In this document: positions 31,236 to 61,400 of the stretch, piece after piece | Position numbering within the stretch: position 1 is the stretch's first letter | Layout: every line of letters starts with the position of its first letter | Made by a program: the position numbers and the translations under genes | Notes under the pieces: model-generated | Seen by the model: only the letters and a program-made list of their open reading frames with translations | What the model was told of the DNA's origin: nothing | The model's database searches: none | Assembly (NCBI GenBank): GCA_965240325.2 | Contig: OZ251225.1 | Location: 1,860,001-1,924,000 of the forward strand | Length of the DNA stretch: 64,000 nucleotides | Direction: 5' to 3' | Source of the DNA: Rebecca billardiae RCC1528 | Taxonomy: Eukaryota > Protista > Haptophyta

Positions 31236-31249
31236 CGCTGGGCGTGATC

Positions 31250-31465
31250 GTCACGCGCGCGCACGGTCATGCGCGCGCACCGATCATTATGTGCCGATCA
31301 TCAGTTCATCATGCGCGCGCTCCGATCATCATGCGTGCGTGCCGATCATCATGCGCGTGTGCCGATCATCATTCGTGCGCGCCGTCATGCGCGCGCACCG
31401 ATCATCATGCGCCGATCATCACGCGCGCGCGACCATCATGCGTGCGCCGCGCGACCATCACCATT
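31250..31465. repeat. Minisatellite (ccgatcatcatgcgcgtg-like, ~21-bp unit)
   Basis: ccgatcat(c/t)at repeated about 7 times. Confidence 0.85.
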
Positions 31466-32132
31466 CGCGCGCCGTGCGCGTCGTCTCGCACACACATTTT
31501 TCGGCGCGCTTTCATGGGCGCACGTGGTGTCTGCGGCCGGGGCGTGATTGACGACGCTATCGGCGAACCGGCGTCGATACCTGAGCCTCTTGGCGGCTCG
31601 GGCGTGTGCCGCGGCAGCTCGGGCGTATGCGCTCTTGCCGGCCGGCTGCCTTGGCGGCGGTGCGCGCGTGCTGCTGGGCGATTTCGGGCAAGTGGACGGC
31701 GCATGGCCTGCTGGTCACCTGCAGCGCCTCGCCTGGCCGGTGCCGGCGCGCGACGACGGGCAGGTTACCCCACTGCTCGGAAGGTCGCTGCCGGGCTCTC
31801 GGCGACCTCTGGGAAGGGCTGAGCGCTCGGGAGGGGGCGTCACGCCACCCGCCGCGCAGCGGCCAAACCCGCCGCGCAGCGGCCAAGCGCCGGCGGCGTG
31901 CTGTGGAGTGGTGGGCAGGGCGCTGCGCCTCTGGGGGTCGGGGCCGGGCCTGGCCTCGGCCGCGCCGGCCGACGCCGGCCATGCCGGCGTGGCGCCTGGC
32001 GCTGCGCCTCTTTGGGCGGGCGCTGCCTCGCCGCCCTGCCCCCCCCGTGGCGACTGGCGGCCCCAGGCAACCCCTGCATCCGCCTATCGTAAACACCGGA
32101 TCGCCAGAAGGAGCACGACGCGCGCGCGGTTA

Positions 32133-32779
32133 TGGGGCGATGGCCGACGCGACGGGAGTGGTGGGTTTGGCAGTCCGCGGCGGTTATCGCGTTATGACTG
32201 CCGCGTCGCTGCTCCGCCGCCGCCCGTGCCCCTCCCCGCTAGGTGGGCGTATACCCGGCCGGACGCGGGCTCGGCGCTCGCAGCGGCATCGCCGGAGTGA
32301 CCGGACGGTGACGAGATGTGAGTCGGAAGCAGCTCGCCTTTGCGGCGCGGGTACCAAGCGGAAAGTGAGCGTACCTGCAGGCGGGCCGACCCTCGGCGTG
32401 ACAGGCGCACCTTCGGGGCCGGTCAGGGCAGCCCACGTCGTGCAGCCGACCGCTTCCGCCGCGACTGCCCCCCGGCGCACCCTGCCCCGGCCGACGCCTG
32501 AGCACAGCGGCCCCGCCCGGGCCCGGGGCCCCCGGGCGGCAGGCCGCGGCAGCCAGCGGCGCTCCTCCGCCTCCCGCCCGCCCTCCCTGGCGTGGGATCG
32601 CCGCGCTGGGGTGGGTGCGGCTTGAGTCAGCGTCCACGGGGGGGGCGATGTGCTGCCGGGCGGGCGCTGCCTCGCCGCCCTGCCCCCCCCCGTGGCGACT
32701 GGCGGCCCCAGGCAACCCCTGCATCCGCCTATCGTAAACACCGGATCGCCAGAAGGAGCACGACGCGCGCGCGGTTATG
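32133..32779 (+). repeat. Second copy of a duplicated intergenic unit (uninterrupted, empty-site version)
   Basis: 32133-32574 matches 23110-23148 + 26324-26332 + 28381-28793; 32658-32779 matches 32014-32134. Confidence 0.9.
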
Positions 32780-32883: not shown

Positions 32884-35188
32884 ATGAGCGCCCCTGCGCC
32901 GCCGCAGCATGGCGCTCCGGGCGCGCTGCCGTCGGTGGCAGACCCTTTGGAGACATTCACTGTCGCGCGCAAGGGCGTCCAGCTGACCCTCACGCCCGTG
33001 CTCGCCACCAACTCGGCCCGTGACGCCGAGCTCCGCGAGGCGGCCATCTCCTTGTACCACCACGTGCTGCCGAGCGTCGGGCGCAAGTTGGTGCGCACGA
33101 TACTCGAGGGCGAGCGCGCGCGGACCATCATGCTGATGAGATCTGTCGAGGGTGCGCGCACCGTCGCCACGCGCACGCATGCTCGCGCGCCCGCGCTCGC
33201 ACGCTCTCACGCTCGCGCGCCCCACCGCGCTCGGCGGCTCGTCGGTCCGTCCTCGCGCTGCGGCTTTGCAGATGTGCTGGCCGAGCGCGAGCTGGCGGCG
33301 GGCGCGGTGGGTGCGGCGGCGAAGGCGCCTGCTGCTACAGGCGGGTGCCCGGCGGAAGACGAGGACGCGGACGATGCGGCGACGTCGTCTTTCAGCGGGC
33401 CGTCGGATGGCGAGGACGAGAGCGGTGACGGGGGAGGCACGGGCAGCGACGCAGATGCGGAGGAGGGCGACGAGGAGGAAGGGGAGGAGGAGGCGGGCGA
33501 CGGGGAGGAGGAAGGTGCCGCTGCCCCGGGTGCCGAGCCCGCCGTCCGAGCCAAGCACCGCATCGTCGGCGCGGCGAGCTTCGAGCTGGTCGAGCCGTCG
33601 CAGTGCCCGCGCGGGCTCGCAGTCTTGCAGCTCACGCTGATCGGGGTGCGTACCAAGCACCAGCAGCTCGGGCTGGGCTCGCAGCTGCTGCGCAGGGCGG
33701 TGGACCCTCGGCTGGCGGGGCCGCACGACACGCTCCTCGCCTTCGCCGACCACGACGCCGTCGACTTCTTCAGGCGGCACGGCTTCACCGACGACGTGAT
33801 CGTCACCTCACAGTTCCGCGCGGTTGTCGACAGCTGGGAGCAGTCCGTGCTGATGGTGCGCTCGGTCGTGCCGGTGCCGCCGCGCGCCGGGTTCGAGCTG
33901 CACGCCGAGCCGGCCGACGCGGCCTCCGTCGCGCCGCGCAGCGCCGTGCTCTGCCCGCCGGCCACGCTCACCGAGCCCCGCTACGCGAGCGCCGCCGACG
34001 TCGGCGACGCGATCGACGCGTGGCGCGAGCAGCGGCTGCAGAGCTACTCACAGGAGCTCGGCCTTCTCGAGCGGCTTCGGGGCGAGGTGCAGACGCTGCG
34101 CAGGCGCTCGGTGCGGCAGGACGACTACGTGAGCTTCCTCATCGCGCAGCTGGCGCAGCTCACGCACGAGCGCGACGCCGTCGCCGCCGAATACGCCGCG
34201 TACCGCGCGCGCGCCGAGCCGGTGCTCGCTGCGGCCGCCAGCGGCGCGCCGCGGCCTGACGACGATGGCGAGGCCGCGCCGGGAGGTGATGGTCGCGTCG
34301 ACGCGGCGAGGCGGCTCGCGCAGGTCGAGCCCGCGAGCCGGCTCTTCGGCCGGCTTGCCGAGAGCTTCGCAGCGTCACTCCGCCCCTCCGAGCACGCGTG
34401 CCCGCCGCTCGCCGCCGTGCGCATCTGGCAGCTCGCCTCTGACGCCGAGCGCGCCGCGCGGCGCGCGCGCTACGACATGAGCCGCGGCCCTGCCGCCGCG
34501 GACAGCAGCGCCGGCGGCTCGCGCTTTGAGCTCGAGCTGTACCTGGGCGCGCCGCTGGCCGTGCTGCAGCAGGTGCGCGCGCCGCCGATGGCGAGGCACG
34601 GGGCGTGCCGGGCGGCGGTTGGCGCGCGCGCGCGAGCCGTGCCGTGTCCGCGCGCCGCCTCGCACCTGCTGCACACCTGCCGTGCTGCCCTCACACGAGC
34701 GTTGCGGTGGTCGCGCGCAGGTGCTGGCCTTTGGGTTCGACGGGTGCGACTGGCCGCCGAGGCACGAGTCTCACGCGCGCCTCGAGGCGTACGGCGAGGG
34801 CGCGTACCTCAGCCGATACGCCTCCAAGGCGCACCACTTCGGCGGCGGCTGCGAGCACGTGCTGCTCGTGGTCGCCGACCTGCGCAACGCGCAGATGGTC
34901 GTGCTGCCTAGCCCGGACCGGACGGCGCCCGACGACGGGGCGTCGGCGATCATCACGCCCGGGCGTCCACTGCCGCTCGGGGCGGGCGGTGTGGAGGGTT
35001 CGGCAGCGCTCGTCGGGACAGGGCAGGCGCAAGGAGAGCCACACGCGGAGGAGGGCCTGAGCGATCTTGCCGGCAATCACCGCTGCGGCGAGGAGATCGT
35101 GATCTTCCGCAAGCGGCTGCCGCCCCTGCTGCCCGTCTGCCTGATTGAGTACGTGCCAGCCTCGGATGCCCCCGATGGCTACGAATAA
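32884..35188 (+). CDS. GCN5-type GNAT acetyltransferase + coiled coil + PARP-like ADP-ribosyltransferase fold; exons 32884-33151, 33272-34572, 34721-35188
   Basis: GNAT motifs IGVRTKHQQLGLGSQLL and LLAFADHDAVDFFRRHGF; introns GTGCGC...GCAG (33152-33271 and 34573-34720) join two ORF-track ORFs in frame; PARP-like ELYLGA..VLAFGF..YGEGAYLSRYASKAHHF..VLLVVADL..EEIVIF..LLPVCLIEY. Confidence 0.8.
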
Positions 35189-35586
35189 TAAGCAGGCGCA
35201 AGTCGCCACCCCTGCTGCCCGTCTGCCTGATTCAGTTCTCAGTTCTCAGTACGTGCCAGCCTCAGATGCCCCGCCCGCGGATGGCTCAAACCCGTGAGGC
35301 GTGAGGTAATATGGGCAGCCCTACTGTGTGTGCACGTTAAAACATAGTAAACTGTATGATACTGTCTCTTCGGAGAGCGTGCGATGAAGGATGGCGCGGC
35401 AAAACAAATAAACTGTCGTACGACGACTTTACTTTACTTTGTGGGGCCGTATCTATGGGGGTATGTATGAGTAATGTATCATCCATACCGGGGGTACAGG
35501 GGATCAAACAACTTGATGCGTGACCAAAGGAAGCCTAAAGAGGGGTCAAAGGAAGACCATGCTGCATGATTGTCGCCCCTCTTGCC

Positions 35587-46400: not shown

Positions 46401-49400
46401 GCAGGGGCAGCGTGCGCACCTCCACGCGCACGCTCGCGCTGCCAAAAGCTTGGGCCGCGCCCGCGTCCGCGCCCGCGCCGGGGTCGCTCGCCGTCACCTC
46501 GAGCTCGTACGTGTGCCCGGCGCTCAGCGAGAAGGGCGGCAGCACGAGCGAGCGCGCGGTCTCCTCGCTCAGCGCCGGGAGTCGGGCGCCGCCCGCCGGC
46601 GCGCCGCCGCCCGGCGTGGCCAGCACGGACACGACGCGCCACGCAAAGGCCAGGGTACCTTCCGCGGCGTGCTCGCCGGCGCTGCAGCCGGGCGGCAGAC
46701 GGATGCTCGCTTCGAGCACGAGCGGCTCGGGCGCCCACGCCGGCACCAGCGGCGGGCCAGCGATCGCAGCAAGCAGCGCGCGCGCGGACGCGCGCTGCGC
46801 GCGGTGCCGCGCCGTCGCAGACGTGAGGCCGAGAAAGTTGGAGACGCGCAGCACAAAGCCCCACACGCGGCCGGCACTCGGCATGCGCACGGCCGCGACC
46901 ATCGCGCCCGGCGGCAGCTCGCGCAGCTGCGCCTCCACCGCCGCCACCTCCGCCTCGGGCGCGCTCGTCACCGCCCGGTCGAGCGCCCACTCGAAGCGGA
47001 GCGGCTTCACGCCGCCGCCCGACGAGCTCGAGCCCTCGAGCCGCACCGTCTCGTTGGCGCACGCCGAGAGCGTCGCGGGCGCGCTGAGCACGGCGAGCGG
47101 CGTGGGGCACGGCGTGTCGCCGCACGGCGCGTCCACGTCGATGGCCGCCTGCAGGCCCGTGCCCACGTACTCCGGCGCGCACGAGGGCGAGCATGCGCCG
47201 GGCATCAGCACGCCATCGCGCACGCGCACGCGCGCGCCGGGCGCGACGGCCGTGTCCGCGCTCAGCCGTACGACCAGCTCGGTGTCATGCGCCCAGTAGC
47301 AAGAGGGCGGGGCGGCGGCGGCCGAGAGCGGCGGCGCGCCCGCGACGAGGGCAAGCGTCTCGTCGTCGAGCACGGCGGTGCACGGCTGCACGCCCGCCGC
47401 CATGCGCGCGCGGTCGGTCGGCTGCGCGTCAAACTCGAGGCGCAGCGCGGTCGCGCTGCCGTCAAACGCGGCGCGCACGAGCTTGGGCGCGTGCAGCCCG
47501 ATCTTGTCGAAGTAGACGCCGCCCTCGTCGGCGGGCAGCGCGTGCTCGGGCGTGAACTGCTGCCCGTTCAGCGCCACGCGCACCTGCGACAAGCCGTCAG
47601 GCCCCGCCACTGGCGTGCGCACGAGCAGCGCGCCATCACTCACCACGTCGGCCGGCACGGCCACCAGCCCAAACGACACGCGCAGCAACGACAGCAGACC
47701 GGCTGGCCCCGCGCCGCCGAGCGCGCCAAACCCCGCGCCGCCGACGATGACAGCTACGCCCGCAAAGCCCGCCGTTGGCGAGCAGCTGTGCACCGACGGC
47801 TCGGCGTAGAGATGGAAGAGCGACCCCGACGCAGAGGTGCTCCCGGCCATCGCGCCGCCGACGGACAGCTCAATGGCCATCGAGCGCGGCTCCTCGGCTG
47901 CGGGCGCAGCGGGCAGCGTGCAGCGCGCGCGGCTCGTGCCGCCGATCGCCGGGAGCAGAGTGGCGGCGGCCGCGCACGCGAGGGGGTCGAGAGCGGGCAG
48001 CACGCAGCAGAGCTGGCCGTCGCCGTAGTCGGCGAAGCCCGCGCCGCTGAGCGTGACAACAGTCCCGCCGCGCACCGGGCCCGCAGGCGGGTCCAGCCCC
48101 TCCACCCGCACGCTGCCTGGGTCGTACAGCTCGACGCTCGGCGCGTCGAAGAGCGGGGGCACGGCGTACGCGCCGCCGTCGAGCGTGAGCCGCACCTCGT
48201 ACACGCCGCCGCCCAGCCCGATGCCGGTCGGCAACGCGCACGTCGCCTCGCGTGCGGAGAGGATGGTTGCGGGCGTACTCGCGAGCGAGACGAACGCACC
48301 GCCGGTACCGACGGGCTGCCCGAACGCGCAGCTGTCGCCACCGCCAGGCGTCGGTACAAACGCGGCGCCTCGCAGCGTAAGGAGCGCGCCAGTGACTCCA
48401 AGCGGCGCGCCGCGCGGCGTCACTGACTCGACAGTGGCGCGCAGCACCGGCGGCGGTGGGGGCAGTGGCGGCGGTGATGGCGGCGGCACCGGCAGCTGCA
48501 CGAGCGCTGGGCTCGGCGGCGCAGACCGGGGCAGGGAACTGGGCGGTGGTGGCGACGGTGGTGATGGCGGCGGGCTGGGCGGTTGGCTGGGCGGCGGGCT
48601 TGGCGGCGGCGATGGCGGTGGACTTGGCGGCGGGCTCGGCGGCGGGCTCTGCGTTGAGCTTGGAGGTGGGCTGGGTGGCGGCGGGTTTGGAGGGGGCGAC
48701 AGTTCCGGGCTGGGCGGAAGGCTCGGTAGTGAGAGTGGGGCTGAGGCGGGTGGCGGCGAGGGCGGCGGCGAGGGAGGCGACGGTGGCGGCAGAGGCTCAG
48801 TCCGAGGCGGCGGTGGTTCCGCTGGAGGCGGGCTCGGCGGCAGGGAAGGCGTTGAGCTGGGCGACAAGCTTGGCGGCGGTGATGGAGGCGGCAATGGTGG
48901 TGAGCTTGGTGGTGCGAGCGGCGGCGGCGATGGTGGTGGTGACGGCGGTGGGCTTCGCGGCGGTGGGGGCGGCGAGCTAGGAGGCTGACTCGACGGCATG
49001 CTCGGCGGTGGAGACGGAGGCGGGCTCGGAGGTGACCACAGTGGCGGCGACAGCGGCGGCGACGATCGTAGTGACGGCGGTGGTGAGGGAGGCGGATGCG
49101 GAGGTGGTGACGGCGGCGGTGGGCTTGGTGGCGGTGATGGGGGCGGGCTTGGTGGCGGGGCCGGCGGTGGGCTTGGCGGCGGTGGGCTCGGTGGTGGGCT
49201 TGGTGGCGGGCTCGGCGGTGGCAACGGTGGTGGTGATGGCGGCGGGGACGGCGGCGTGCTCGGCGGTGGGCTTGGCGGTGGCGAAGGCAGCGGCGATGGC
49301 GGGGGTGACGGCGGTGGGCTCGGAGGTATCGGGCTCGGCGGTGGCATCGGTGGTGGTGATGGCGGCGGGGACGGCGGCGGGCTCGGCGGTGGGCTTGGTG

Positions 49401-52400
49401 GCGGGCTCGGCGGCGGCGATGGCGGCGGGCTGGGTGGTGGCGATGGTGGTGGATAGGGCGGCGGTAAGGGCGGCAGCGACGGCGGCGGCGGTGATGGTGG
49501 TGGCGAGGGCGGAGGCGAGGGCGGTGGTGACGGTGGTGGCGAGGGCGGTGAGGGCGGTGGCGAGGGCGGTGGGCTGGGTGGTGGCGATGGCGGCCGGCTC
49601 GGTGGTGGGCTGGGCGGTGGCGACAGCGGAGGGCTCGGAGGCGGCGGGCTGGGCGGAGGCGATGGCGGCGGGCTGGGCGAAGGCGACGGCGGTGGGCTCG
49701 GCGGTGGGCTCGGCGGCAGGCTCGGCGGCGGCGATGGCGGTGGGCTGGGTGGTGGTGACGGTGGTGGCGAGGGCGGCGGTGAGGGCGGCGGCGACGGCGG
49801 CGGCGGTGATGGTGGTGGCAAGGGCGGAGGCGAGGGCGGTGGTGACGGTGGTGGCGAGGGCGGTGGTGATGGCGGTGGCGAGGGCGGTGGGCTTGGTGGT
49901 GGCGATGGTGGCGGGCTCGGTGGTGGGCTGGGCGGCGGCGACGGCGGTGGGCTCGGCGGCGGCGGGCTGGGCGGAGGCGACGGCGGTGGGCTGGGCGGAG
50001 GCGACGGCGGTGGGCTCGGCGGTGGGCTCGGCGGCGGGCTTGGTGGTGGCGATGGCGGTGGGCTTGGCGGTGGCGATGGCGGTGGGCTTGGCGGCGGTGA
50101 CGGCGGTGGGCTCGGAGGCGGCGGGCTCGGCGGCGGGCTCGGTGGCGGTGATGGCGGCGGGGACGGCGGAGGGCTCGGCGGTGGGCTTGGTGGCGGGCTC
50201 GGCGGCGGCGATGGCGGTGGGCTGGGTGGTGGTGACGGTGGTGGCGAGGGCGGCGGTGAGGGCGGCGGCGACGGCGGCGGCGGTGACGGTGGTGGCGAGG
50301 GCGGAGGCGAGGGCGGTGGTGACGGTGGTGGCGAGGGCGGTGGTGAGGGCGGTGGGCTGGGCGGTGGGCTGGGCGGTGGCGATGGTGGCGGGCTCGGAGG
50401 CGGGCTGGGCGGCGGCGACGGTGGAGGGCTCGGCGGTGGCGGGCTGGGCGGAGGCGACGGCGGTGGGCTGGGCGGAGGCGACGGCGGTGGGCTCGGCGGT
50501 GGGCTCGGCGGCGGGCTTGGTGGTGGCGATGGCGGTGGGCTTGGCGGTGGCGATGGAGGTGGGCTTGGCGGCGGTGACGGCGGTGGGCTCGGAGGCGGCG
50601 GGCTCGGCGGCGGGCTCGGTGGCGGTGATGGCGGCGGGGACGGCGGAGGGCTCGGCGGTGGGCTTGGTGGCGGGCTCGGCGGCGGCGACGGCGGTGGGCT
50701 GGGTGGTGGTGACGGTGGTGGCGAGGGCGGCGGTGAGGGCGGCGGCGACGGCGGCGGCGGTGACGGTGGTGGCGAGGGCGGAGGCGAGGGCGGTGGTGAC
50801 GGTGGTGGCGAGGGCGGTGGTGAGGGCGGTGGGCTGGGCGGTGGGCTGGGCGGTGGCGATGGTGGCGGGCTCGGAGGCGGGCTGGGCGGCGGCGACGGCG
50901 GTGGGCTCGGCGGCGGCGGGCTTGGCGGAGGCGATGGCGGTGGGCTGGGCGGAGGCGACGGCGGTGGGCTCGGCGGTGGGCTCGGCGGCGGGCTTGGTGG
51001 TGGCGATGGCGGTGGGCTTGGCGGTGGCGATGGCGGTGGGCTTGGCGGCGGTGACGGCGGTGGGCTCGGAGGCGGCGGGCTCGGCGGCGGGCTCGGTGGC
51101 GGTGATGGCGGCGGGGACGGCGGAGGGCTCGGCGGTGGGCTTGGTGGCGGGCTCGGCGGCGGCGATGGCGGTGGGCTGGGTGGTGGTGACGGTGGTGGCG
51201 AGGGCGGCGGTGAGGGCGGCGGCGACGGCGGCGGCGGTGACGGTGGTGGCGAGGGCGGAGGCGAGGGCGGTGGTGACGGTGGTGGCGAGGGCGGTGGTGA
51301 GGGCGGTGGGCTGGGCGGTGGGCTGGGCGGTGGCGATGGTGGCGGGCTCGGAGGCGGGCTGGGCGGCGGCGACGGTGGAGGGCTCGGCGGTGGCGGGCTG
51401 GGCGGAGGCGACGGCGGTGGGCTGGGCGGAGGCGACGGCGGTGGGCTCGGCGGTGGGCTCGGCGGCGGGCTTGGTGGTGGCGATGGCGGTGGGCTTGGCG
51501 GTGGCGATGGCGGTGGGCTTGGCGGCGGTGACGGCGGTGGGCTCGGAGGCGGCGGGCTCGGCGGCGGGCTCGGTGGCGGTGATGGCGGCGGGGACGGCGG
51601 AGGGCTCGGCGGTGGGCTTGGTGGCGGGCTCGGCGGCGGCGATGGCGGTGGGCTGGGTGGTGGTGACGGTGGTGGCGAGGGCGGCGGTGAGGGCGGCGGC
51701 GACGGCGGCGGCGGTGACGGTGGTGGCGAGGGCGGAGGCGAGGGCGGTGGTGACGGTGGTGGCGAGGGCGGTGGTGAGGGCGGTGGGCTGGGCGGTGGGC
51801 TGGGCGGTGGCGATGGTGGCGGGCTCGGAGGCGGGCTGGGCGGCGGCGACGGTGGAGGGCTCGGCGGTGGCGGGCTGGGCGGAGGCGACGGCGGTGGGCT
51901 GGGCGGAGGCGACGGCGGTGGGCTCGGCGGTGGGCTCGGCGGCGGGCTTGGTGGTGGCGATGGCGGTGGGCTTGGCGGTGGCGATGGAGGTGGGCTTGGC
52001 GGCGGTGACGGCGGTGGGCTCGGAGGCGGCGGGCTCGGCGGCGGGCTCGGTGGCGGTGATGGCGGCGGGGACGGCGGAGGGCTCGGCGGTGGGCTTGGTG
52101 GCGGGCTCGGCGGCGGCGATGGCGGTGGGCTGGGTGGTGGTGACGGTGGTGGCGAGGGCGGCGGTGAGGGCGGCGGCGACGGCGGCGGCGGTGACGGTGG
52201 TGGCGAGGGCGGAGGCGAGGGCGGTGGTGACGGTGGTGGCGAGGGCGGTGGTGAGGGCGGTGGGCTGGGCGGTGGGCTGGGCGGTGGCGATGGTGGCGGG
52301 CTCGGAGGCGGGCTGGGCGGCGGCGACGGCGGTGGGCTCGGCGGCGGCGGGCTTGGCGGAGGCGATGGCGGTGGGCTGGGCGGAGGCGACGGCGGTGGGC

Positions 52401-55400
52401 TCGGCGGTGGGCTCGGCGGCGGGCTTGGTGGTGGCGATGGCGGTGGGCTTGGCGGTGGCGATGGCGGCGGGCTTGGCGGTGGTGACGGCGGTGGGCTCGG
52501 AGGCGGCGGGCTCGGCGGCGGGCTCGGTGGCGGTGATGGCGGCGGGGACGGCGGAGGGCTCGGCGGTGGGCTTGGTGGCGGGCTCGGCGGCGGCGACGGC
52601 GGTGGGTTGGGTGGTGGTGACGGTGGTGGCGAGGGCGGCGGTGAGGGCGGCGGCGACGGCGGCGGCGGTGACGGTGGTGGCGAGGGCGGAGGCGAGGGCG
52701 GTGGTGAAGGTGGTGGCGAGGGCGGTGGTGAGGGCGGTGGGCTGGGCGGTGGGCTGGGTGGTGGCGATGGTGGCGGGCTCGGAGGCGGGCTGGGCGGCGG
52801 CGACGGCGGTGGGCTCGGCGGCGGCGGGCTGGGCGGAGGCGATGGCGGTGGGCTGGGCGGAGGCGACGGCGGTGGGCTCGGCGGTGGGCTCGGCGGCGGG
52901 CTTGGTGGTGGCGATGGCGGTGGGCTTGGCGGCGGGCTCGGCGGTGGGCTTGGCGGCGGTGACGGCGGTGGGCTCGGAGGCGGCGGGCTCGGCGGCGGGC
53001 TCGGTGGCGGTGATGGCGGCGGGGACGGCGGTGGGCTCGGCGGTGGGCTTGGTGGCGGGCTCGGCGGCGGCGATGGCGGTGGGCTGGGTGGTGGTGACGG
53101 TGGTGGCGAGGGCGGCGGTGAGGGCGGCGGCGACGGCGGCGGCGGTGACGGTGGTGGCGAGGGCGGAGGCGAGGGCGGTGGTGACGGTGGTGGCGAGGGC
53201 GGTGGTGAGGGCGGTCGGCTGGGCGGTGGGCTGGGTGGTGGCGATGGTGGCGGGCTCGGAGGCGGGCTGGGCGGCGGCGACGGCGGTGGGCTCGGCGGTG
53301 GCGGGCTGGGCGGAGGCGACGGCGGTGGGCTGGGCGGAGGCGACGGCGGTGGGCTCGGCGGTGGGCTCGGCGGCGGGCTTGGTGGTGGCGATGGCGGTGG
53401 GCTTGGCGGTGGCGATGGCGGTGGGCTTGGCGGTGGTGACGGCGGTGGGCTCGGAGGCGGCGGGCTCGGCGGCGGGCTCGGTGGTGGTGATGGCGGCGGG
53501 GACGGCGGAGGGCTCGGCGGTGGGCTTGGTGGCGGGCTCGGCGGCGGCGACGGCGGTGGGCTGGGTGGTGGTGACGGTGGTGGCGAGGGCGGCGGTGAGG
53601 GCGGCGGCGACGGCGGCGGCGGTGACGGTGGTGGCGAGGGCGGAGGCGAGGGCGGTGGTGACGGTGGTGGCGAGGGCGGTGGTGAGGGCGGTGGGCTGGG
53701 CGGTGGGCTGGGCGGTGGCGATGGTGGCGGGCTCGGAGGCGGGCTGGGCGGCGGCGACGGCGGAGGGCTCGGCGGTGGCGGGCTGGGCGGAGGCGACGGC
53801 GGTGGGCTGGGCGGAGGCGACGGCGGTGGGCTCGGCGGTGGGCTCGGCGGCGGGCTTGGTGGTGGCGATGGCGGTGGGCTTGGCGGTGGCGATGGCGGTG
53901 GGCTTGGCGGCGGTGACGGCGGTGGGCTCGGAGGCGGCGGGCTCGGCGGCGGGCTCGGTGGCGGTGATGGCGGCGGGGACGGCGGAGGGCTCGGCGGTGG
54001 GCTTGGTGGCGGGCTCGGCGGCGGCGATGGCGGTGGGCTGGGTGGTGGTGACGGTGGTGGCGAGGGCGGCGGTGAGGGCGGCGGCGACGGCGGCGGCGGT
54101 GACGGTGGTGGCGAGGGCGGAGGCGAGGGCGGTGGTGACGGTGGTGGCGAGGGCGGTGGTGAGGGCGGTGGGCTGGGCGGTGGGCTGGGCGGTGGCGATG
54201 GTGGCGGGCTCGGAGGCGGGCTGGGCGGCGGCGACGGCGGTGGGCTCGGCGGCGGCGGGCTGGGCGGAGGCGATGGCGGTGGGCTGGGCGGAGGCGACGG
54301 CGGTGGGCTCGGCGGTGGGCTCGGCGGCGGGCTTGGTGGTGGCGATGGCGGTGGGCTTGGCAGCGGGCTCGGCGGTGGGCTTGGCGGCGGTGACGGCGGT
54401 GGGCTCGGAGGCGGCGGGCTCGGCGGCGGGCTCGGTGGCGGTGATGGCGGCGGGGACGGCGGTGGGCTCGGCGGTGGGCTTGGTGGCGGGCTCGGCGGCG
54501 GCGATGGCGGTGGGCTGGGTGGTGGTGACGGTGGTGGCGAGGGCGGCGGTGAGGGCGGCGGCGACGGCGGCGGCGGTGACGGTGGTGGCGAGGGCGGAGG
54601 CGAGGGCGGTGGTGACGGTGGTGGCGAGGGCGGTGGTGAGGGCGGTGGGCTGGGCGGTGGGCTGGGCGGTGGCGATGGTGGCGGGCTCGGAGGCGGGCTG
54701 GGCGGCGGCGACGGCGGTGGGCTCGGCGGCGGCGGGCTGGGCGGAGGCGACGGCGGTGGGCTGGGCGGAGGCGACGGCGGTGGGCTCGGCGGTGGGCTCG
54801 GCGGCGGGCTTGGTGGTGGCGATGGCGGTGGGCTTGGCGGTGGCGATGGCGGTGGGCTTGGCGGTGGTGACGGCGGTGGGCTCGGAGGCGGCGGGCTCGG
54901 CGGCGGGCTCGGTGGCGGTGATGGCGGCGGGGACGGCGGAGGGCTCGGCGGTGGGCTTGGTGGCGGGCTCGGCGGCGGCGACGGCGGTGGGCTGGGTGGT
55001 GGTGACGGTGGTGGCGAGGGCGGCGGTGAGGGCGGCGGCGACGGCGGCGGCGGTGACGGTGGTGGCGAGGGCGGAGGCGAGGGCGGTGGTGACGGTGGTG
55101 GCGAGGGCGGTGGTGAGGGCGGTGGGCTGGGCGGTGGGCTGGGCGGTGGCGATGGTGGCGGGCTCGGAGGCGGGCTGGGCGGCGGCGACGGCGGTGGGCT
55201 CGGCGGCGGCGGGCTGGGCGGAGGCGATGGCGGTGGGCTGGGCGGAGGCGACGGCGGTGGGCTCGGCGGTGGGCTCGGCGGCGGGCTTGGTGGTGGCGAT
55301 GGCGGTGGGCTTGGCGGTGGCGATGGCGGCGGGCTTGGCGGTGGTGACGGCGGTGGGCTCGGAGGCGGCGGGCTCGGCGGCGGGCTCGGTGGCGGTGATG

Positions 55401-58400
55401 GCGGCGGGGACGGCGGAGGGCTCGGCGGTGGGCTTGGTGGCGGGCTCGGCGGCGGCGACGGCGGTGGGTTGGGTGGTGGTGACGGTGGTGGCGAGGGCGG
55501 CGGTGAGGGCGGCGGCGACGGCGGCGGCGGTGACGGTGGTGGCGAGGGCGGAGGCGAGGGCGGTGGTGACGGTGGTGGCGAGGGCGGTGGTGAGGGCGGT
55601 GGGCTGGGCGGTGGGCTGGGCGGTGGCGATGGTGGCGGGCTCGGAGGCGGGCTGGGCGGCGGCGACGGCGGTGGGCTCGGCGGCGGCGGGCTGGGCGGAG
55701 GCGATGGCGGTGGGCTGGGCGGAGGCGACGGCGGTGGGCTCGGCGGTGGGCTCGGCGGCGGGCTTGGTGGTGGCGATGGCGGTGGGCTTGGCGGTGGCGA
55801 TGGCGGTGGGCTTGGCGGCGGTGACGGCGGTGGGCTCGGAGGCGGCGGGCTCGGCGGCGGGCTCGGTGGCGGTGATGGCGGCGGGGACGGCGGAGGGCTC
55901 GGCGGTGGGCTTGGTGGCGGGCTCGGCGGCGGCGATGGCGGTGGGCTGGGTGGTGGTGACGGTGGTGGCGAGGGCGGCGGTGAGGGCGGCGGCGACGGCG
56001 GCGGCGGTGACGGTGGTGGCGAGGGCGGAGGCGAGGGCGGTGGTGACGGTGGTGGCGAGGGCGGTGGTGAGGGCGGTGGGCTGGGCGGTGGGCTGGGCGG
56101 TGGCGATGGTGGCGGGCTCGGAGGCGGGCTGGGCGGCGGCGACGGCGGAAGGCTCGGCGGTGGCGGGCTGGGCGGAGGCGACGGCGGTGGGCTGGGCGGA
56201 GGCGACGGCGGTGGGCTCGGCGGTGGGCTCGGCGGCGGGCTTGGTGGTGGCGATGGCGGTGGGCTTGGCGGTGGCGATGGAGGTGGGCTTGGCGGCGGTG
56301 ACGGCGGTGGGCTCGGAGGCGGCGGGCTCGGCGGCGGGCTCGGTGGCGGTGATGGCGGCGGGGACGGCGGAGGGCTCGGCGGTGGGCTTGGTGGCGGGCT
56401 CGGCGGCGGCGACGGCGGTGGGCTGGGTGGTGGTGACGGTGGTGGCGAGGGCGGCGGTGAGGGCGGCGGCGACGGCGGCGGCGGTGACGGTGGTGGCGAG
56501 GGCGGAGGCGAGGGCGGTGGTGACGGTGGTGGCGAGGGCGGTGGTGAGGGCGGTGGGCTGGGCGGTGGGCTGGGCGGTGGCGATGGTGGCGGGCTCGGAG
56601 GCGGGCTGGGCGGCGGCGACGGCGGTGGGCTCGGCGGCGGCGGGCTGGGCGGAGGCGATGGCGGTGGGCTGGGCGGAGGCGACGGCGGTGGGCTCGGCGG
56701 TGGGCTCGGCGGCGGGCTTGGTGGTTGCGATGGCGGTGGGCTTGGCGGCGGGCTCGGCGGTGGGCTTGGCGGCGGTGACGGCGGTGGGCTCGGAGGCGGC
56801 GGGCTCGGCGGCGGGCTCGGTGGCGGTGATGGCGGCGGAGACGGCGGAGGGCTCGGCGGTGGGCTTGGTGGCGGGCTCGGCGGCGGCGACGGCGGTGGGC
56901 TGGGTGGTGGTGACGGTGGTGGCGAGGGCGGCGGTAAGGGCGGCGGCGACGGCGGCGGCGGTGACGGTGGTGGCGAGGGCGGAGGCGAGGGCGGTGGTGA
57001 CGGTGGTGGCGAGGGCGGTGGTGAGGGCGGTGGGCTGGGCGGTGGGCTGGGTGGTGGCGATGGTGGCGGGCTCGGAGGCGGGCTGGGCGGCGGCGACGGC
57101 GGAGGGCTCGGCGGCGGCGGGCTGGGCGGAGGCGATGGCGGTGGGCTGGGCGGAGGCGACGGCGGTGGGCTCGGCGGTGGGCTCGGCGGAGGGCTTGGTG
57201 GTGGCGATGGCGGTGGGCTTGGCGGTGGCGATGGGGGTGGGCTTGGCGGCGGTGACGGCGGTGGGCTCGGAGGCGGCGGGCTCGGCGGCGGGCTCGGTGG
57301 CGGTGATGGCGGCGGGGACGGCGGAGGGCTCGGCGGTGGGCTTGGTGGCGGGCTCGGCGGCGGCGACGGCGGTGGGTTGGGTGGTGGTGACGGTGGTGGC
57401 GAGGGCGGCGGTGAGGGCGGCGGCGACGGCGGCGGCGGTGACGGTGGTGGCGAGGGCGGAGGCGAGGGCGGTGGTGACGGTGGTGGCGAGGGCGGTGGTG
57501 AGGGCGGTGGGCTGGGCGGTGGGCTGGGCGGTGGCGATGGTGGCGGGCTCGGAGGCGGGCTGGGCGGCGGCGACGGCGGTGGGCTCGGCGGCGGCGGGCT
57601 TGGCGGAGGCGATGGCGGTGGGCTGGGCGGAGGCGACGGCGGTGGGCTCGGCGGTGGGCTCGGCGGCGGGCTTGGTGGTGGCGATGGCGGTGGGCTTGGC
57701 GGTGGCGATGGCGGTGGGCTTGGCGGCGGTGACGGCGGTGGGCTCGGAGGCGGCGGGCTCGGCGGCGGGCTCGGTGGCGGTGATGGCGGCGGGGACGGCG
57801 GAGGGCTCGGCGGTGGGCTTGGTGGCGGGCTCGGCGGCGGCGATGGCGGTGGGCTGGGTGGTGGTGACGGTGGTGGCGAGGGCGGCGGTGAGGGCGGCGG
57901 CGACGGCGGCGGCGGTGACGGTGGTGGCGAGGGCGGAGGCGAGGGCGGTGGTGACGGTGGTGGCGAGGGCGGTGGTGAGGGCGGTGGGCTGGGCGGTGGG
58001 CTGGGCGGTGGCGATGGTGGCGGGCTCGGAGGCGGGCTGGGCGGCGGCGACGGCGGTGGGCTCGGCGGCGGCGGGCTGGGCGGAGGCGATGGCGGTGGGC
58101 TGGGCGGAGGCGACGGCGGTGGGCTCGGCGGTGGGCTCGGCGGCGGGCTTGGTGGTGGCGATGGCGGTGGGCTTGGCGGCGGGCTCGGCGGTGGGCTTGG
58201 CGGCGGTGACGGCGGTGGGCTCGGAGGCGGCGGGCTCGGCGGCGGGCTCGGTGGCGGTGATGGCGGCGGGGACGGCGGTGGGCTCGGCGGTGGGCTTGGT
58301 GGCGGGCTCGGCGGCGGCGATGGCGGTGGGCTGGGTGGTGGTGACGGTGGTGGCGAGGGCGGCGGTGAGGGCGGCGGCGACGGCGGCGGCGGTGACGGTG

Positions 58401-61400
58401 GTGGCGAGGGCGGAGGCGAGGGCGGTGGTGACGGTGGTGGCGAGGGCGGTGGTGAGGGCGGTGGGCTGGGCGGTGGGCTGGGCGGTGGCGATGGTGGCGG
58501 GCTCGGAGGCGGGCTGGGCGGCGGCGACGGCGGTGGGCTCGGCGGCGGCGGGCTGGGCGGAGGCGACGGCGGTGGGCTGGGCGGAGGCGACGGCGGTGGG
58601 CTCGGCGGTGGGCTCGGCGGCGGGCTTGGTGGTGGCGATGGCGGTGGGCTTGGCGGTGGCGATGGCGGTGGGCTTGGCGGTGGTGACGGCGGTGGGCTCG
58701 GAGGCGGCGGGCTCGGCGGCGGGCTCGGTGGCGGTGATGGCGGCGGGGACGGCGGAGGGCTCGGCGGTGGGCTTGGTGGCGGGCTCGGCGGCGGCGACGG
58801 CGGTGGGCTGGGTGGTGGTGACGGTGGTGGCGAGGGCGGCGGTGAGGGCGGCGGCGACGGCGGCGGCGGTGACGGTGGTGGCGAGGGCGGAGGCGAGGGC
58901 GGTGGTGACGGTGGTGGCGAGGGCGGTGGTGAGGGCGGTGGGCTGGGCGGTGGGCTGGGCGGTGGCGATGGTGGCGGGCTCGGAGGCGGGCTGGGCGGCG
59001 GCGACGGCGGTGGGCTCGGCGGCGGCGGGCTGGGCGGAGGCGATGGCGGTGGGCTGGGCGGAGGCGACGGCGGTGGGCTCGGCGGTGGGCTCGGCGGCGG
59101 GCTTGGTGGTGGCGATGGCGGTGGGCTTGGCGGTGGCGATGGCGGCGGGCTTGGCGGTGGTGACGGCGGTGGGCTCGGAGGCGGCGGGCTCGGCGGCGGG
59201 CTCGGTGGCGGTGATGGCGGCGGGGACGGCGGAGGGCTCGGCGGTGGGCTTGGTGGCGGGCTCGGCGGCGGCGACGGCGGTGGGTTGGGTGGTGGTGACG
59301 GTGGTGGCGAGGGCGGCGGTGAGGGCGGCGGCGACGGCGGCGGCGGTGACGGTGGTGGCGAGGGCGGAGGCGAGGGCGGTGGTGACGGTGGTGGCGAGGG
59401 CGGTGGTGAGGGCGGTGGGCTGGGCGGTGGGCTGGGCGGTGGCGATGGTGGCGGGCTCGGAGGCGGGCTGGGCGGCGGCGACGGCGGTGGGCTCGGCGGC
59501 GGCGGGCTGGGCGGAGGCGATGGCGGTGGGCTGGGCGGAGGCGACGGCGGTGGGCTCGGCGGTGGGCTCGGCGGCGGGCTTGGTGGTGGCGATGGCGGTG
59601 GGCTTGGCGGTGGCGATGGCGGTGGGCTTGGCGGCGGTGACGGCGGTGGGCTCGGAGGCGGCGGGCTCGGCGGCGGGCTCGGTGGCGGTGATGGCGGCGG
59701 GGACGGCGGAGGGCTCGGCGGTGGGCTTGGTGGCGGGCTCGGCGGCGGCGATGGCGGTGGGCTGGGTGGTGGTGACGGTGGTGGCGAGGGCGGCGGTGAG
59801 GGCGGCGGCGACGGCGGCGGCGGTGACGGTGGTGGCGAGGGCGGAGGCGAGGGCGGTGGTGACGGTGGTGGCGAGGGCGGTGGTGAGGGCGGTGGGCTGG
59901 GCGGTGGGCTGGGCGGTGGCGATGGTGGCGGGCTCGGAGGCGGGCTGGGCGGCGGCGACGGCGGAAGGCTCGGCGGTGGCGGGCTGGGCGGAGGCGACGG
60001 CGGTGGGCTGGGCGGAGGCGACGGCGGTGGGCTCGGCGGTGGGCTCGGCGGCGGGCTTGGTGGTGGCGATGGCGGTGGGCTTGGCGGTGGCGATGGAGGT
60101 GGGCTTGGCGGCGGTGACGGCGGTGGGCTCGGAGGCGGCGGGCTCGGCGGCGGGCTCGGTGGCGGTGATGGCGGCGGGGACGGCGGAGGGCTCGGCGGTG
60201 GGCTTGGTGGCGGGCTCGGCGGCGGCGACGGCGGTGGGCTGGGTGGTGGTGACGGTGGTGGCGAGGGCGGCGGTGAGGGCGGCGGCGACGGCGGCGGCGG
60301 TGACGGTGGTGGCGAGGGCGGAGGCGAGGGCGGTGGTGACGGTGGTGGCGAGGGCGGTGGTGAGGGCGGTGGGCTGGGCGGTGGGCTGGGCGGTGGCGAT
60401 GGTGGCGGGCTCGGAGGCGGGCTGGGCGGCGGCGACGGCGGTGGGCTCGGCGGCGGCGGGCTGGGCGGAGGCGATGGCGGTGGGCTGGGCGGAGGCGACG
60501 GCGGTGGGCTCGGCGGTGGGCTCGGCGGCGGGCTTGGTGGTTGCGATGGCGGTGGGCTTGGCGGCGGGCTCGGCGGTGGGCTTGGCGGCGGTGACGGCGG
60601 TGGGCTCGGAGGCGGCGGGCTCGGCGGCGGGCTCGGTGGCGGTGATGGCGGCGGGGACGGCGGAGGGCTCGGCGGTGGGCTTGGTGGCGGGCTCGGCGGC
60701 GGCGACGGCGGTGGGCTGGGTGGTGGTGACGGTGGTGGCGAGGGCGGCGGTAAGGGCGGCGGCGACGGCGGCGGCGGTGACGGTGGTGGCGAGGGCGGAG
60801 GCGAGGGCGGTGGTGACGGTGGTGGCGAGGGCGGTGGTGAGGGCGGTGGGCTGGGCGGTGGGCTGGGTGGTGGCGATGGTGGCGGGCTCGGAGGCGGGCT
60901 GGGCGGCGGCGACGGCGGAGGGCTCGGCGGCGGCGGGCTGGGCGGAGGCGATGGCGGTGGGCTGGGCGGAGGCGACGGCGGTGGGCTCGGGCGGTGGGCT
61001 CGGCGGGAGGGCTTGGTGGTGGCGATGGCGGTGGGCTTGGCGGTGGCGATGGGGGTGGGCTTGGCGGCGGTGACGGCGGTGGGCTCGGAGGCGGCGGGCT
61101 CGGCGGCGGGCTCGGTGGCGGTGATGGCGGCGGGGACGGCGGAGGGCTCGGCGGTGGGCTTGGTGGCGGGCTCGGCGGCGGCGACGGCGGTGGGTTGGGT
61201 GGTGGTGACGGTGGTGGCGAGGGCGGCGGTGAGGGCGGCGGCGACGGCGGCGGCGGTGACGGTGGTGGCGAGGGCGGAGGCGAGGGCGGTGGTGACGGTG
61301 GTGGCGAGGGCGGTGGTGAGGGCGGTGGGCTGGGCGGTGGGCTGGGCGGTGGCGATGGTGGCGGGCTCGGAGGCGGGCTGGGCGGCGGCGACGGCGGTGG

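Follow-up and report, generated by a model that had tools for sequence, protein, structure and literature searches.

A haptophyte gene encodes a distant member of a widespread family in which a GCN5-type acetyltransferase is joined to a PARP-like domain without the triad histidine

What does a PARP-like domain do when it is fused to an acetyltransferase and has lost the histidine of its catalytic triad? This question is raised by a gene on contig OZ251225.1 of the haptophyte Rebecca billardiae RCC1528 (GCA_965240325.2). The stretch of DNA that we analysed covers 64,000 nucleotides of the forward strand of this contig (positions 1,860,001 to 1,924,000) and is hereafter called the window; all coordinates without another label refer to it. 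Read from the sequence, the gene lies at window 32884-35188 on the plus strand and consists of three exons with 678 codons, separated by two GT..AG introns (Table 1). Few enzymes of chromatin and signalling have been studied as thoroughly as PARP-family proteins and GCN5-type acetyltransferases, yet their conserved fusion is without a named member. From comparisons of sequences, profiles and models, we conclude that the window gene belongs, as a distant algal representative, to a real and widespread family of GNAT-coiled coil-PARP proteins, and that it is intact, with three exons that encode a 678-residue member of this old eukaryotic family. The algal gene shows that this layout did not first arise in animals. 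Taken alone, the window locus adds phyletic breadth and not a new principle.

The gene model comes first, as everything else is built upon it. A first-pass annotation, made from the letters of this DNA, had proposed that two canonical introns are spliced out to give one protein. The splice sites are in place, and both junctions are contiguous in relatives. Exon 1 is 60% identical over 70 residues to the N-terminus of the relative P0003/L003 in a pairwise comparison, and the first junction (RSVE/DVLAERE) runs uninterrupted in this relative as RSAEDVLAERR. The 40 codons of intron 1 are missing from all relatives. Exon 2 is 44-47% identical to its relatives across 84-92% of the exon. The second junction (VLQQ/VLAFGFD) is uninterrupted in P0009 (EVLQNVLINGFD), and a GT..AG intron is found at the identical codon to window intron 2 in L002, L003 and L008. 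In L002 this intron is in frame, so that a single open reading frame (ORF; P0002, 639 residues) runs through the GNAT, coiled-coil and PARP-like parts. Because the PARP-fold domain straddles intron 2, exon 3 would be unable to fold without exon 2. The gene is single-copy in a 72-Mb genome.

The entry for this locus in the protein collection, P0001 (window 32884-34911, 675 residues), is a prokaryote-style call with a spurious Arg-rich tail. Since intron 1 keeps the frame and contains no stop codon, the call reads through it and then runs on into intron 2 and past it in the wrong frame. Searches with entries such as P0001 would miss the PARP-like domain.

The window exons were searched separately, and tests of whole domains were made on natural ORFs of close relatives. 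Exon 3 of the window on its own gives a Pfam PARP match of E 0.078 and 12.9 bits (cut-off 26.7) for this piece of a domain that the intron splits. Exon 3 of L003 matches at E 1.6e-4 (profile positions 73-197). Scores above the Pfam PARP gathering score are reached by P0011 and P0012 (37.9 and 42.7 bits), which the exon 3 profile had retrieved as more distant relatives, and by P0020 (59 bits), and PF00644 matches 47 of 50 family members (E<=1). Single-sequence searches of solved structures returned only noise or weak GNAT matches. With the exon 3 profile by itself, PARP matches stayed below the threshold, and the result became decisive only with the wider family profile, which matches tankyrase-1 (E 3.9e-14), ZAP/PARP13 (1.2e-12), PARP10 (3.5e-11) and PARP1 (3e-10).

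The PARP-like domain was modelled on the natural ORF of L002 (L002:3347-4177), including its in-frame intron, which loops out of the model at low confidence. The alignment used for the model has 50 rows, with the exon 2 and exon 3 pieces of the window as separate rows. The model has a predicted local distance difference test score (pLDDT) of 82.9 and a predicted template modelling score (pTM) of 0.81, and the window pieces align along its entire length. A Foldseek search against the PDB returned 358 chains at E<=1e-3; among the matches listed, all are PARP catalytic domains. A second structural aligner gave Z of 17-18 over ~175-185 residues, with a root-mean-square deviation of ~3 Å, to tankyrases, PARP10, PARP12, PARP14 and PARP15. 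On these profile matches and this model of a relative, we regard the ART/PARP (ADP-ribosyltransferase/PARP) fold of the C-terminal domain, as read in the first-pass annotation, as established.

The likeness to canonical PARPs (tankyrase 1/2, PARP10, PARP12, PARP14, PARP15; PF00644) thus extends over the fold of the whole domain, with ~180 aligned residues at Z 17-18. The motifs G-x-G-x-Y-F/L, S-K, D-S-I and E-Y-V-V-F are held in common, and the triad Tyr and Glu are kept. The window family differs in lacking the triad His, in having Ala for the nicotinamide-binding Ser and in possessing extra invariant Arg residues. It also differs in its partner, as the domain is fused to a GNAT and not to WWE, macro, ankyrin or zinc-finger modules.

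The loss of the His deserves a closer look. The motif ELYLGA, which had been picked out as the counterpart of the His-bearing strand, is present within the strand LELYLGAP. Two columns of this strand are candidates for the His position, and in 42 relatives they hold Y/F/L/C/V/W and G/C/A, respectively; His is never found in either. The choice between the two depends on the register of the alignment. The spacing from LELYLGAP to the conserved G-F equals that in the LFHGT...GF of PARP10 and PARP14, and this places the Leu at the His position. The HMMER alignment to tankyrase instead places the adjacent Gly there. The earlier claim that Leu stands in place of the His therefore holds as to the absence of His, and as to Leu it depends on the register. 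The Tyr of GEGAYLS and the distal Glu of EEIVIF had both been said to remain, and both do, each being present in every one of the 47 family members compared. The window protein retains all ten near-invariant positions of the family. From the family alignment, both hydrogen-bond donors to NAD+ (the His and the Ser) are judged to be lost family-wide, and the remaining pocket and the catalytic Glu are strongly constrained. With two hydrogen-bond contacts to NAD+ lost and the catalytic Glu and Tyr invariant over very deep divergence, the family would offer a clean test of whether a PARP fold without the His is able to function or to bind a ligand.

The N-terminal half was described in the first-pass annotation as a GCN5-type GNAT with an acidic insertion, and this description has stood up well. 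Pfam GNAT matches window exon 2 at E 7e-6, and the family profile matches Tetrahymena GCN5 at E 4e-13. We modelled the N-terminal 285 residues of L003 (L003:6001-6855; pLDDT 80.6), which share 55-56% identity with the first two exons of the window gene. In a Foldseek search of this model against the PDB, GCN5/PCAF histone acetyltransferase domains occupy nearly all of the first 40 ranks, with target-normalised TM (template modelling) scores mostly of 0.72-0.81, and NatD comes next. The residues of exon 1 fall inside the GCN5-like fold of the relative's model. Motif A and the segment A-D-x-x-A-x-x-F-F-x-x-x-G-F are shared with GCN5/PCAF, which are the best matches by both structure and profile. 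The acidic insertion is a loop of 92 residues rich in D/E, and in the relative's model the corresponding part (residues ~100-170) is of low confidence and unstructured. Animal members carry an equivalent acidic Ser-rich stretch, F-x-D-V-F-S-D-S-E.

The family differs from GCN5/PCAF in its acidic insertion, in its coiled-coil and PARP-fold partners and at the general base. The general-base Glu of GCN5, E173 in yeast Gcn5 and E122 in Tetrahymena, is replaced by Gln in the window protein. In the family alignment this column is Q, H or K and never E. No bromodomain was matched by Pfam scans in the window exons or in the relatives. Judged by these profiles and the relative's model, the GNAT half is of GCN5 type with an acidic insertion, yet it is no GCN5 orthologue, being without a bromodomain and without the general-base Glu.

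The two enzymatic folds are joined by a conserved helical segment. Relatives give weak Pfam matches here to the coiled-coil families SlyX, DivIC, Csm1_N and KASH_CCD, and the pattern W-R..R/K...Y-S-x-E-L is conserved in animal members. These weak matches and this conservation are the evidence behind the coiled coil that had been placed between the GNAT and the PARP fold, and the segment is probably a dimerising coiled coil.

How widespread is this architecture? A search of 1.84 billion representatives with a profile hidden Markov model made from exon 3 and its close relatives returned only 66 proteins. Full-length members were reached at E ~1e-17 to 1e-5, and 16 of the 20 longer matches scanned (mostly 575-826 residues) have both GNAT and PARP Pfam matches in the same order. 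Members come from the glaucophyte Cyanophora, echinoderms, molluscs, a sea anemone, amphioxus, rotifers and chordates, with further members in Picozoa (partial, the PARP half) and in one MMETSP transcriptome. A word search with the amphioxus protein adds a brachiopod, a nemertean, many bivalves and gastropods, corals and Nematostella, and among the chordates Ciona, lamprey, elephant shark, bowfin, caecilian, newt and axolotl. Taken together, the searches place full-length proteins of this architecture in Cyanophora, rotifers, cnidarians, molluscs, echinoderms, amphioxus, Ciona, shark and amphibians. A word search with exon 2 returned 4 proteins, the acidic stretch having probably dominated the words. 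The vertebrate members checked retain LYYCGG, the Tyr motif and QE[FY][IV][IV]F. The matches listed include no amniote, insect or nematode, and none from fungi or land plants. The family may be a branch of the PARP superfamily that is probably ancient in eukaryotes and has been kept in protists, invertebrates, fish and amphibians, with no amniote, insect or nematode among the matches listed. Members are present in tractable animals, including zebrafish, Ciona, Nematostella and sea urchins.

Most of the database entries are named "uncharacterized/hypothetical protein". Some have automatic names such as "N-acetyltransferase domain-containing protein", "PARP catalytic domain-containing protein" and "glucosamine-phosphate N-acetyltransferase", and the shark entry (Callorhinchus) is named after zebrafish si:dkeyp-50b9.1. 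A single paper was found to contain this name; there the gene is listed as strongly up in testis, alongside meiotic and flagellar genes (10.1101/650218), which is a lead and not a function. The closest counterparts in architecture are such unnamed GNAT-coiled coil-PARP proteins, e.g., Patiria miniata XP_038068410, Actinia tenebrosa XP_031568080, Cyanophora paradoxa EP00741_P012043 and the Callorhinchus "si:dkeyp-50b9.1". They have in common with the window protein the three-part architecture, the acidic GNAT loop, a Gln, His or Lys at the GCN5 Glu position, a strand 1 without His, and the invariant Tyr, Glu, Arg and PGR. The window protein itself has the domain order of the family and its invariant residues (G-x-G-x-Y, S-K-A, R, P-G-R and E-x-V-x-F). 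The differences lie in overall identity, which is just 22-30% to the modelled close relative L002, and in strand 1, which reads Leu-Gly-Ala in the algal clade versus Tyr/Phe-Cys-Gly in animals.

A literature search, made largely without subscription journals, found no paper describing a GNAT-PARP fusion. The fusion is absent from the PARP surveys that we examined, and acetyltransferase partners of PARPs are unmentioned in one of them (Citarelli 2010; PMC2964712). The first-pass annotation had not recognised the architecture as characterised. This is upheld in that no characterisation was found, but the fusion is widespread in databases and to that extent is already a partly annotated family.

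One of the matches to the exon 3 profile, P0051 (1199 residues), combines a reverse-transcriptase domain with a C-terminal PARP-like domain. Of the two motifs checked against the amphioxus family member, one is identical and one differs at a single residue. In P0051 a retroelement has probably been merged into a chimeric gene model.

What the protein does must be judged from these parts. The reading that we favour, and which we hold to be about evenly poised between right and wrong, is a dimeric acetyl-CoA-dependent acyltransferase whose PARP-like domain binds its ligand non-canonically and does not carry out standard ADP-ribosylation. The coiled coil would dimerise the protein. With acetyl-CoA as the donor, the GNAT half would acylate a basic protein substrate, either histone-like or an N-terminus, which the acidic loop would help to hold. 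The PARP-like domain would have no standard NAD+-dependent ADP-ribosylation activity; its preserved pocket may bind a nucleotide-like or phosphate-bearing ligand and so target or regulate the enzyme. Several points weigh against this proposal. The Glu and Tyr are absolutely conserved over very deep divergence, as would be expected of an active transferase and not of a decayed pseudoenzyme, and the Glu is lost in PARP13, TASOR and TEX15, unlike in the window family. Lacking the GCN5 general base, the GNAT might itself be a slow enzyme, might rely on a different base or might modify an amine other than that of lysine. The residue equivalent to the His is Leu or Gly according to the register of the sequence alignment. 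Finally, the structural tests were made on relatives that are 45-60% identical to the window protein and not on the window protein itself.

The strongest rival is an active ADP-ribosyltransferase with non-canonical NAD+ binding, which would make the protein a dual writer of acetylation and ADP-ribosylation. An aromatic or small residue would replace the His, and two family-specific Arg would hold the diphosphate. Such an enzyme would account for a Glu and a Tyr conserved in 47 of 47 members, for a stacking F/Y conserved from protists to vertebrates and for the invariant R and PGR, and active PARPs are the best structural matches. It would have to work, however, with both the adenosine-ribose-binding His and the nicotinamide-amide-binding Ser replaced family-wide. 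Loss of the His abolishes activity in PARP1, diphtheria toxin and exotoxin A. PARP9 and PARP13, which are without the triad His, are also inactive on their own (PMC7955679 Table 1). We consider an active transferase possible, but on the doubtful side. Somewhat more speculative is the idea that the family is an undescribed branch of the PARP superfamily in which a GCN5-like acetyltransferase works jointly with a PARP domain that lacks the His but retains the Glu. If this is true, the protein could be a dual writer with a new mode of NAD+ binding or an acetyltransferase switched by a ligand derived from NAD+ or ADP-ribose, and animal members may have a role in the male germline.

That both halves are pseudoenzymes is unlikely; on this view the protein would be a non-catalytic scaffold or reader for acetyl-CoA/CoA together with an ADP-ribose-like ligand, or for chromatin/RNA. 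In every member, Gln, His or Lys stands where GCN5 has its general-base Glu, but many GNATs function without this Glu, and both motif A and the remaining GNAT core show good conservation. In the PARP-like domain the His and Ser have been lost, but the invariant residues of the pocket suggest chemistry or tight ligand binding. The PARP-like domain of ZAP is among the best profile matches (E 1.2e-12 over its full length), and it is itself a His-less PARP fold without ADP-ribose transfer (PARP13/ZAP; PDB 4X52, 2X5Y). The ZAP triad is Y-Y-V, with the Glu lost, whereas the window family keeps the Glu in every member.

The first-pass annotation had also likened the domain to the pseudo-PARP domains of TASOR and TEX15, a kinship that we do not find supported. 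It is very unlikely that the window protein is a distant TASOR/TEX15 DUF3715 member acting in RNA-directed transposon silencing. The likeness consists of a PARP-like fold, a hydrophobic residue in place of the His and a Y-L-S second strand, as in the "YLS" of TASOR with its L-Y-Q triad (PMC7955679). The triads of TEX15 and PARP13 are L-Y-S and Y-Y-V, so that all three proteins are without the Glu (PMC7955679) that is retained in the window family, and the partners of the TASOR and TEX15 domains are SPOC, DomI and PIN. In the Pfam scans of the relatives no SPOC or DomI was seen, and GNAT and the coiled coil were the only partner domains. PF12509 (DUF3715) has no match at E<=10 for the window exons and is outside the 25 families most matched by the 50 members (E<=1), compared with PF00644 in 47 of these 50. 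The best matches are canonical PARPs, and no TASOR structure is among the 50 best structural matches listed. Membership in DUF3715 was rejected on the PF00644 match, the retained Glu and the different partner domains. One observation on the other side is that si:dkeyp-50b9.1, the zebrafish gene name given by NCBI to the shark member, is among testis-upregulated genes (10.1101/650218), as would be expected for germline silencing factors.

That the fusion is an artefact of two genes, with exon 3 a separate gene or pseudogene remnant, as its weak Pfam PARP match on its own and the duplication of the final 55 nt of the coding sequence right behind the stop codon could suggest, is scarcely credible and was rejected in view of the fold split by intron 2, the contiguous junction in P0009, the in-frame read-through ORF in L002, a layout common to more than 60 full-length proteins elsewhere and the invariant residues, all of which are intact in the window gene.

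Table 1. Features of the GNAT-coiled coil-PARP gene, in window coordinates
Feature	Position	Strand	Remarks
Exon 1	32884-33151	+	Start codon and N-terminal part of GNAT (strands and helices preceding the insertion)
Intron 1	33152-33271	+	GT..AG, 120 nt, in frame, stop-free
Exon 2	33272-34572	+	Acidic loop, GNAT core, coiled coil, N-terminal third of PARP-fold domain
Acidic Ser-rich GNAT insertion	33274-33549	+	92 aa, 29 D/E, 3 K/R
Conserved TSSFSGPS motif inside acidic insertion	33382-33405	+	
Gln in place of GCN5 general-base Glu	33628-33630	+	Profile alignment: Glu of Tetrahymena GCN5 FAEVAF onto VLQLTL
GNAT motif A, QQLGLG (form Q/R-x-x-G-x-G), acetyl-CoA pyrophosphate loop	33661-33678	+	Read directly; conserved in all full-length relatives
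Predicted coiled coil joining GNAT and PARP-like domains	34012-34218	+	Weak Pfam coiled-coil matches in relatives, conservation
N-terminal part of PARP-fold domain with strand LELYLGAP	34345-34572	+	Aligned to first 96 residues of the modelled domain of a relative
Candidate His-equivalent residues in LELYLGAP	Leu 34543-34545 or Gly 34546-34548	+	Depends on alignment register
Intron 2	34573-34720	+	GT..AG, 148 nt, frame-shifting, interrupts PARP-fold domain
Exon 3	34721-35188	+	Remainder of PARP-fold domain, TAA stop
Triad Tyr (GEGAYLS)	34805-34807	+	47/47 in family; aligns to tankyrase GIYF
Ala replacing nicotinamide-binding Ser	34829-34831	+	Ala in 45/47
Stacking aromatic Phe	34838-34840	+	F/Y in family
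Family-specific invariant Arg	34919-34921	+	46/46
Family-specific invariant Gly-Arg of P-G-R	34961-34966	+	46/47
Triad Glu (GEEIVIF)	35093-35095	+	47/47 in family; aligns to tankyrase AEYVIY

The surroundings of the gene were compared with those in relatives. In the contigs of L003 (8087-13100) and L008 (4746-10281), the gene is followed by genes for an Arf-like GTPase, TBCA (L003 only), a TPR protein and RRP4. In the window, tblastn found no counterpart of these four neighbours; the gene neighbourhood is thus, on this sequence comparison, rearranged in the window, a region with several transposons. The comparison of synteny with relatives gave no functional clue.

Several repeats lie close to the gene. 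Upstream, at window 31246-31435, there are ~20-nt units of the form GATCATCATGCGCGCGC, with at least 5 repeats. Exact direct repeats of 33 nt and 96 nt, which overlap each other, are found at window 32014-32134 and 32658-32779. Their spacing is ~645 bp, and the start codon lies ~105 nt downstream of the end of the second copy. The repeats may reflect a recent local duplication of the 5′ region or the end of a repeat element. At the other end of the gene, the last ~55 nt of the coding sequence (window 35119-35172) are repeated just downstream of the stop codon (window 35205-35272) at 94-96% identity, with ~14 nt extra between the two matched blocks of the downstream copy. The C-terminal tail, a part that varies among the relatives too, seems to have been remade by a small tandem duplication. 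Farther downstream, the 16 kb at window 48000-64000 have ~81% G+C, a strong and constant GC skew of +0.5 and a negative AT skew, and look like a long strand-biased repeat array.

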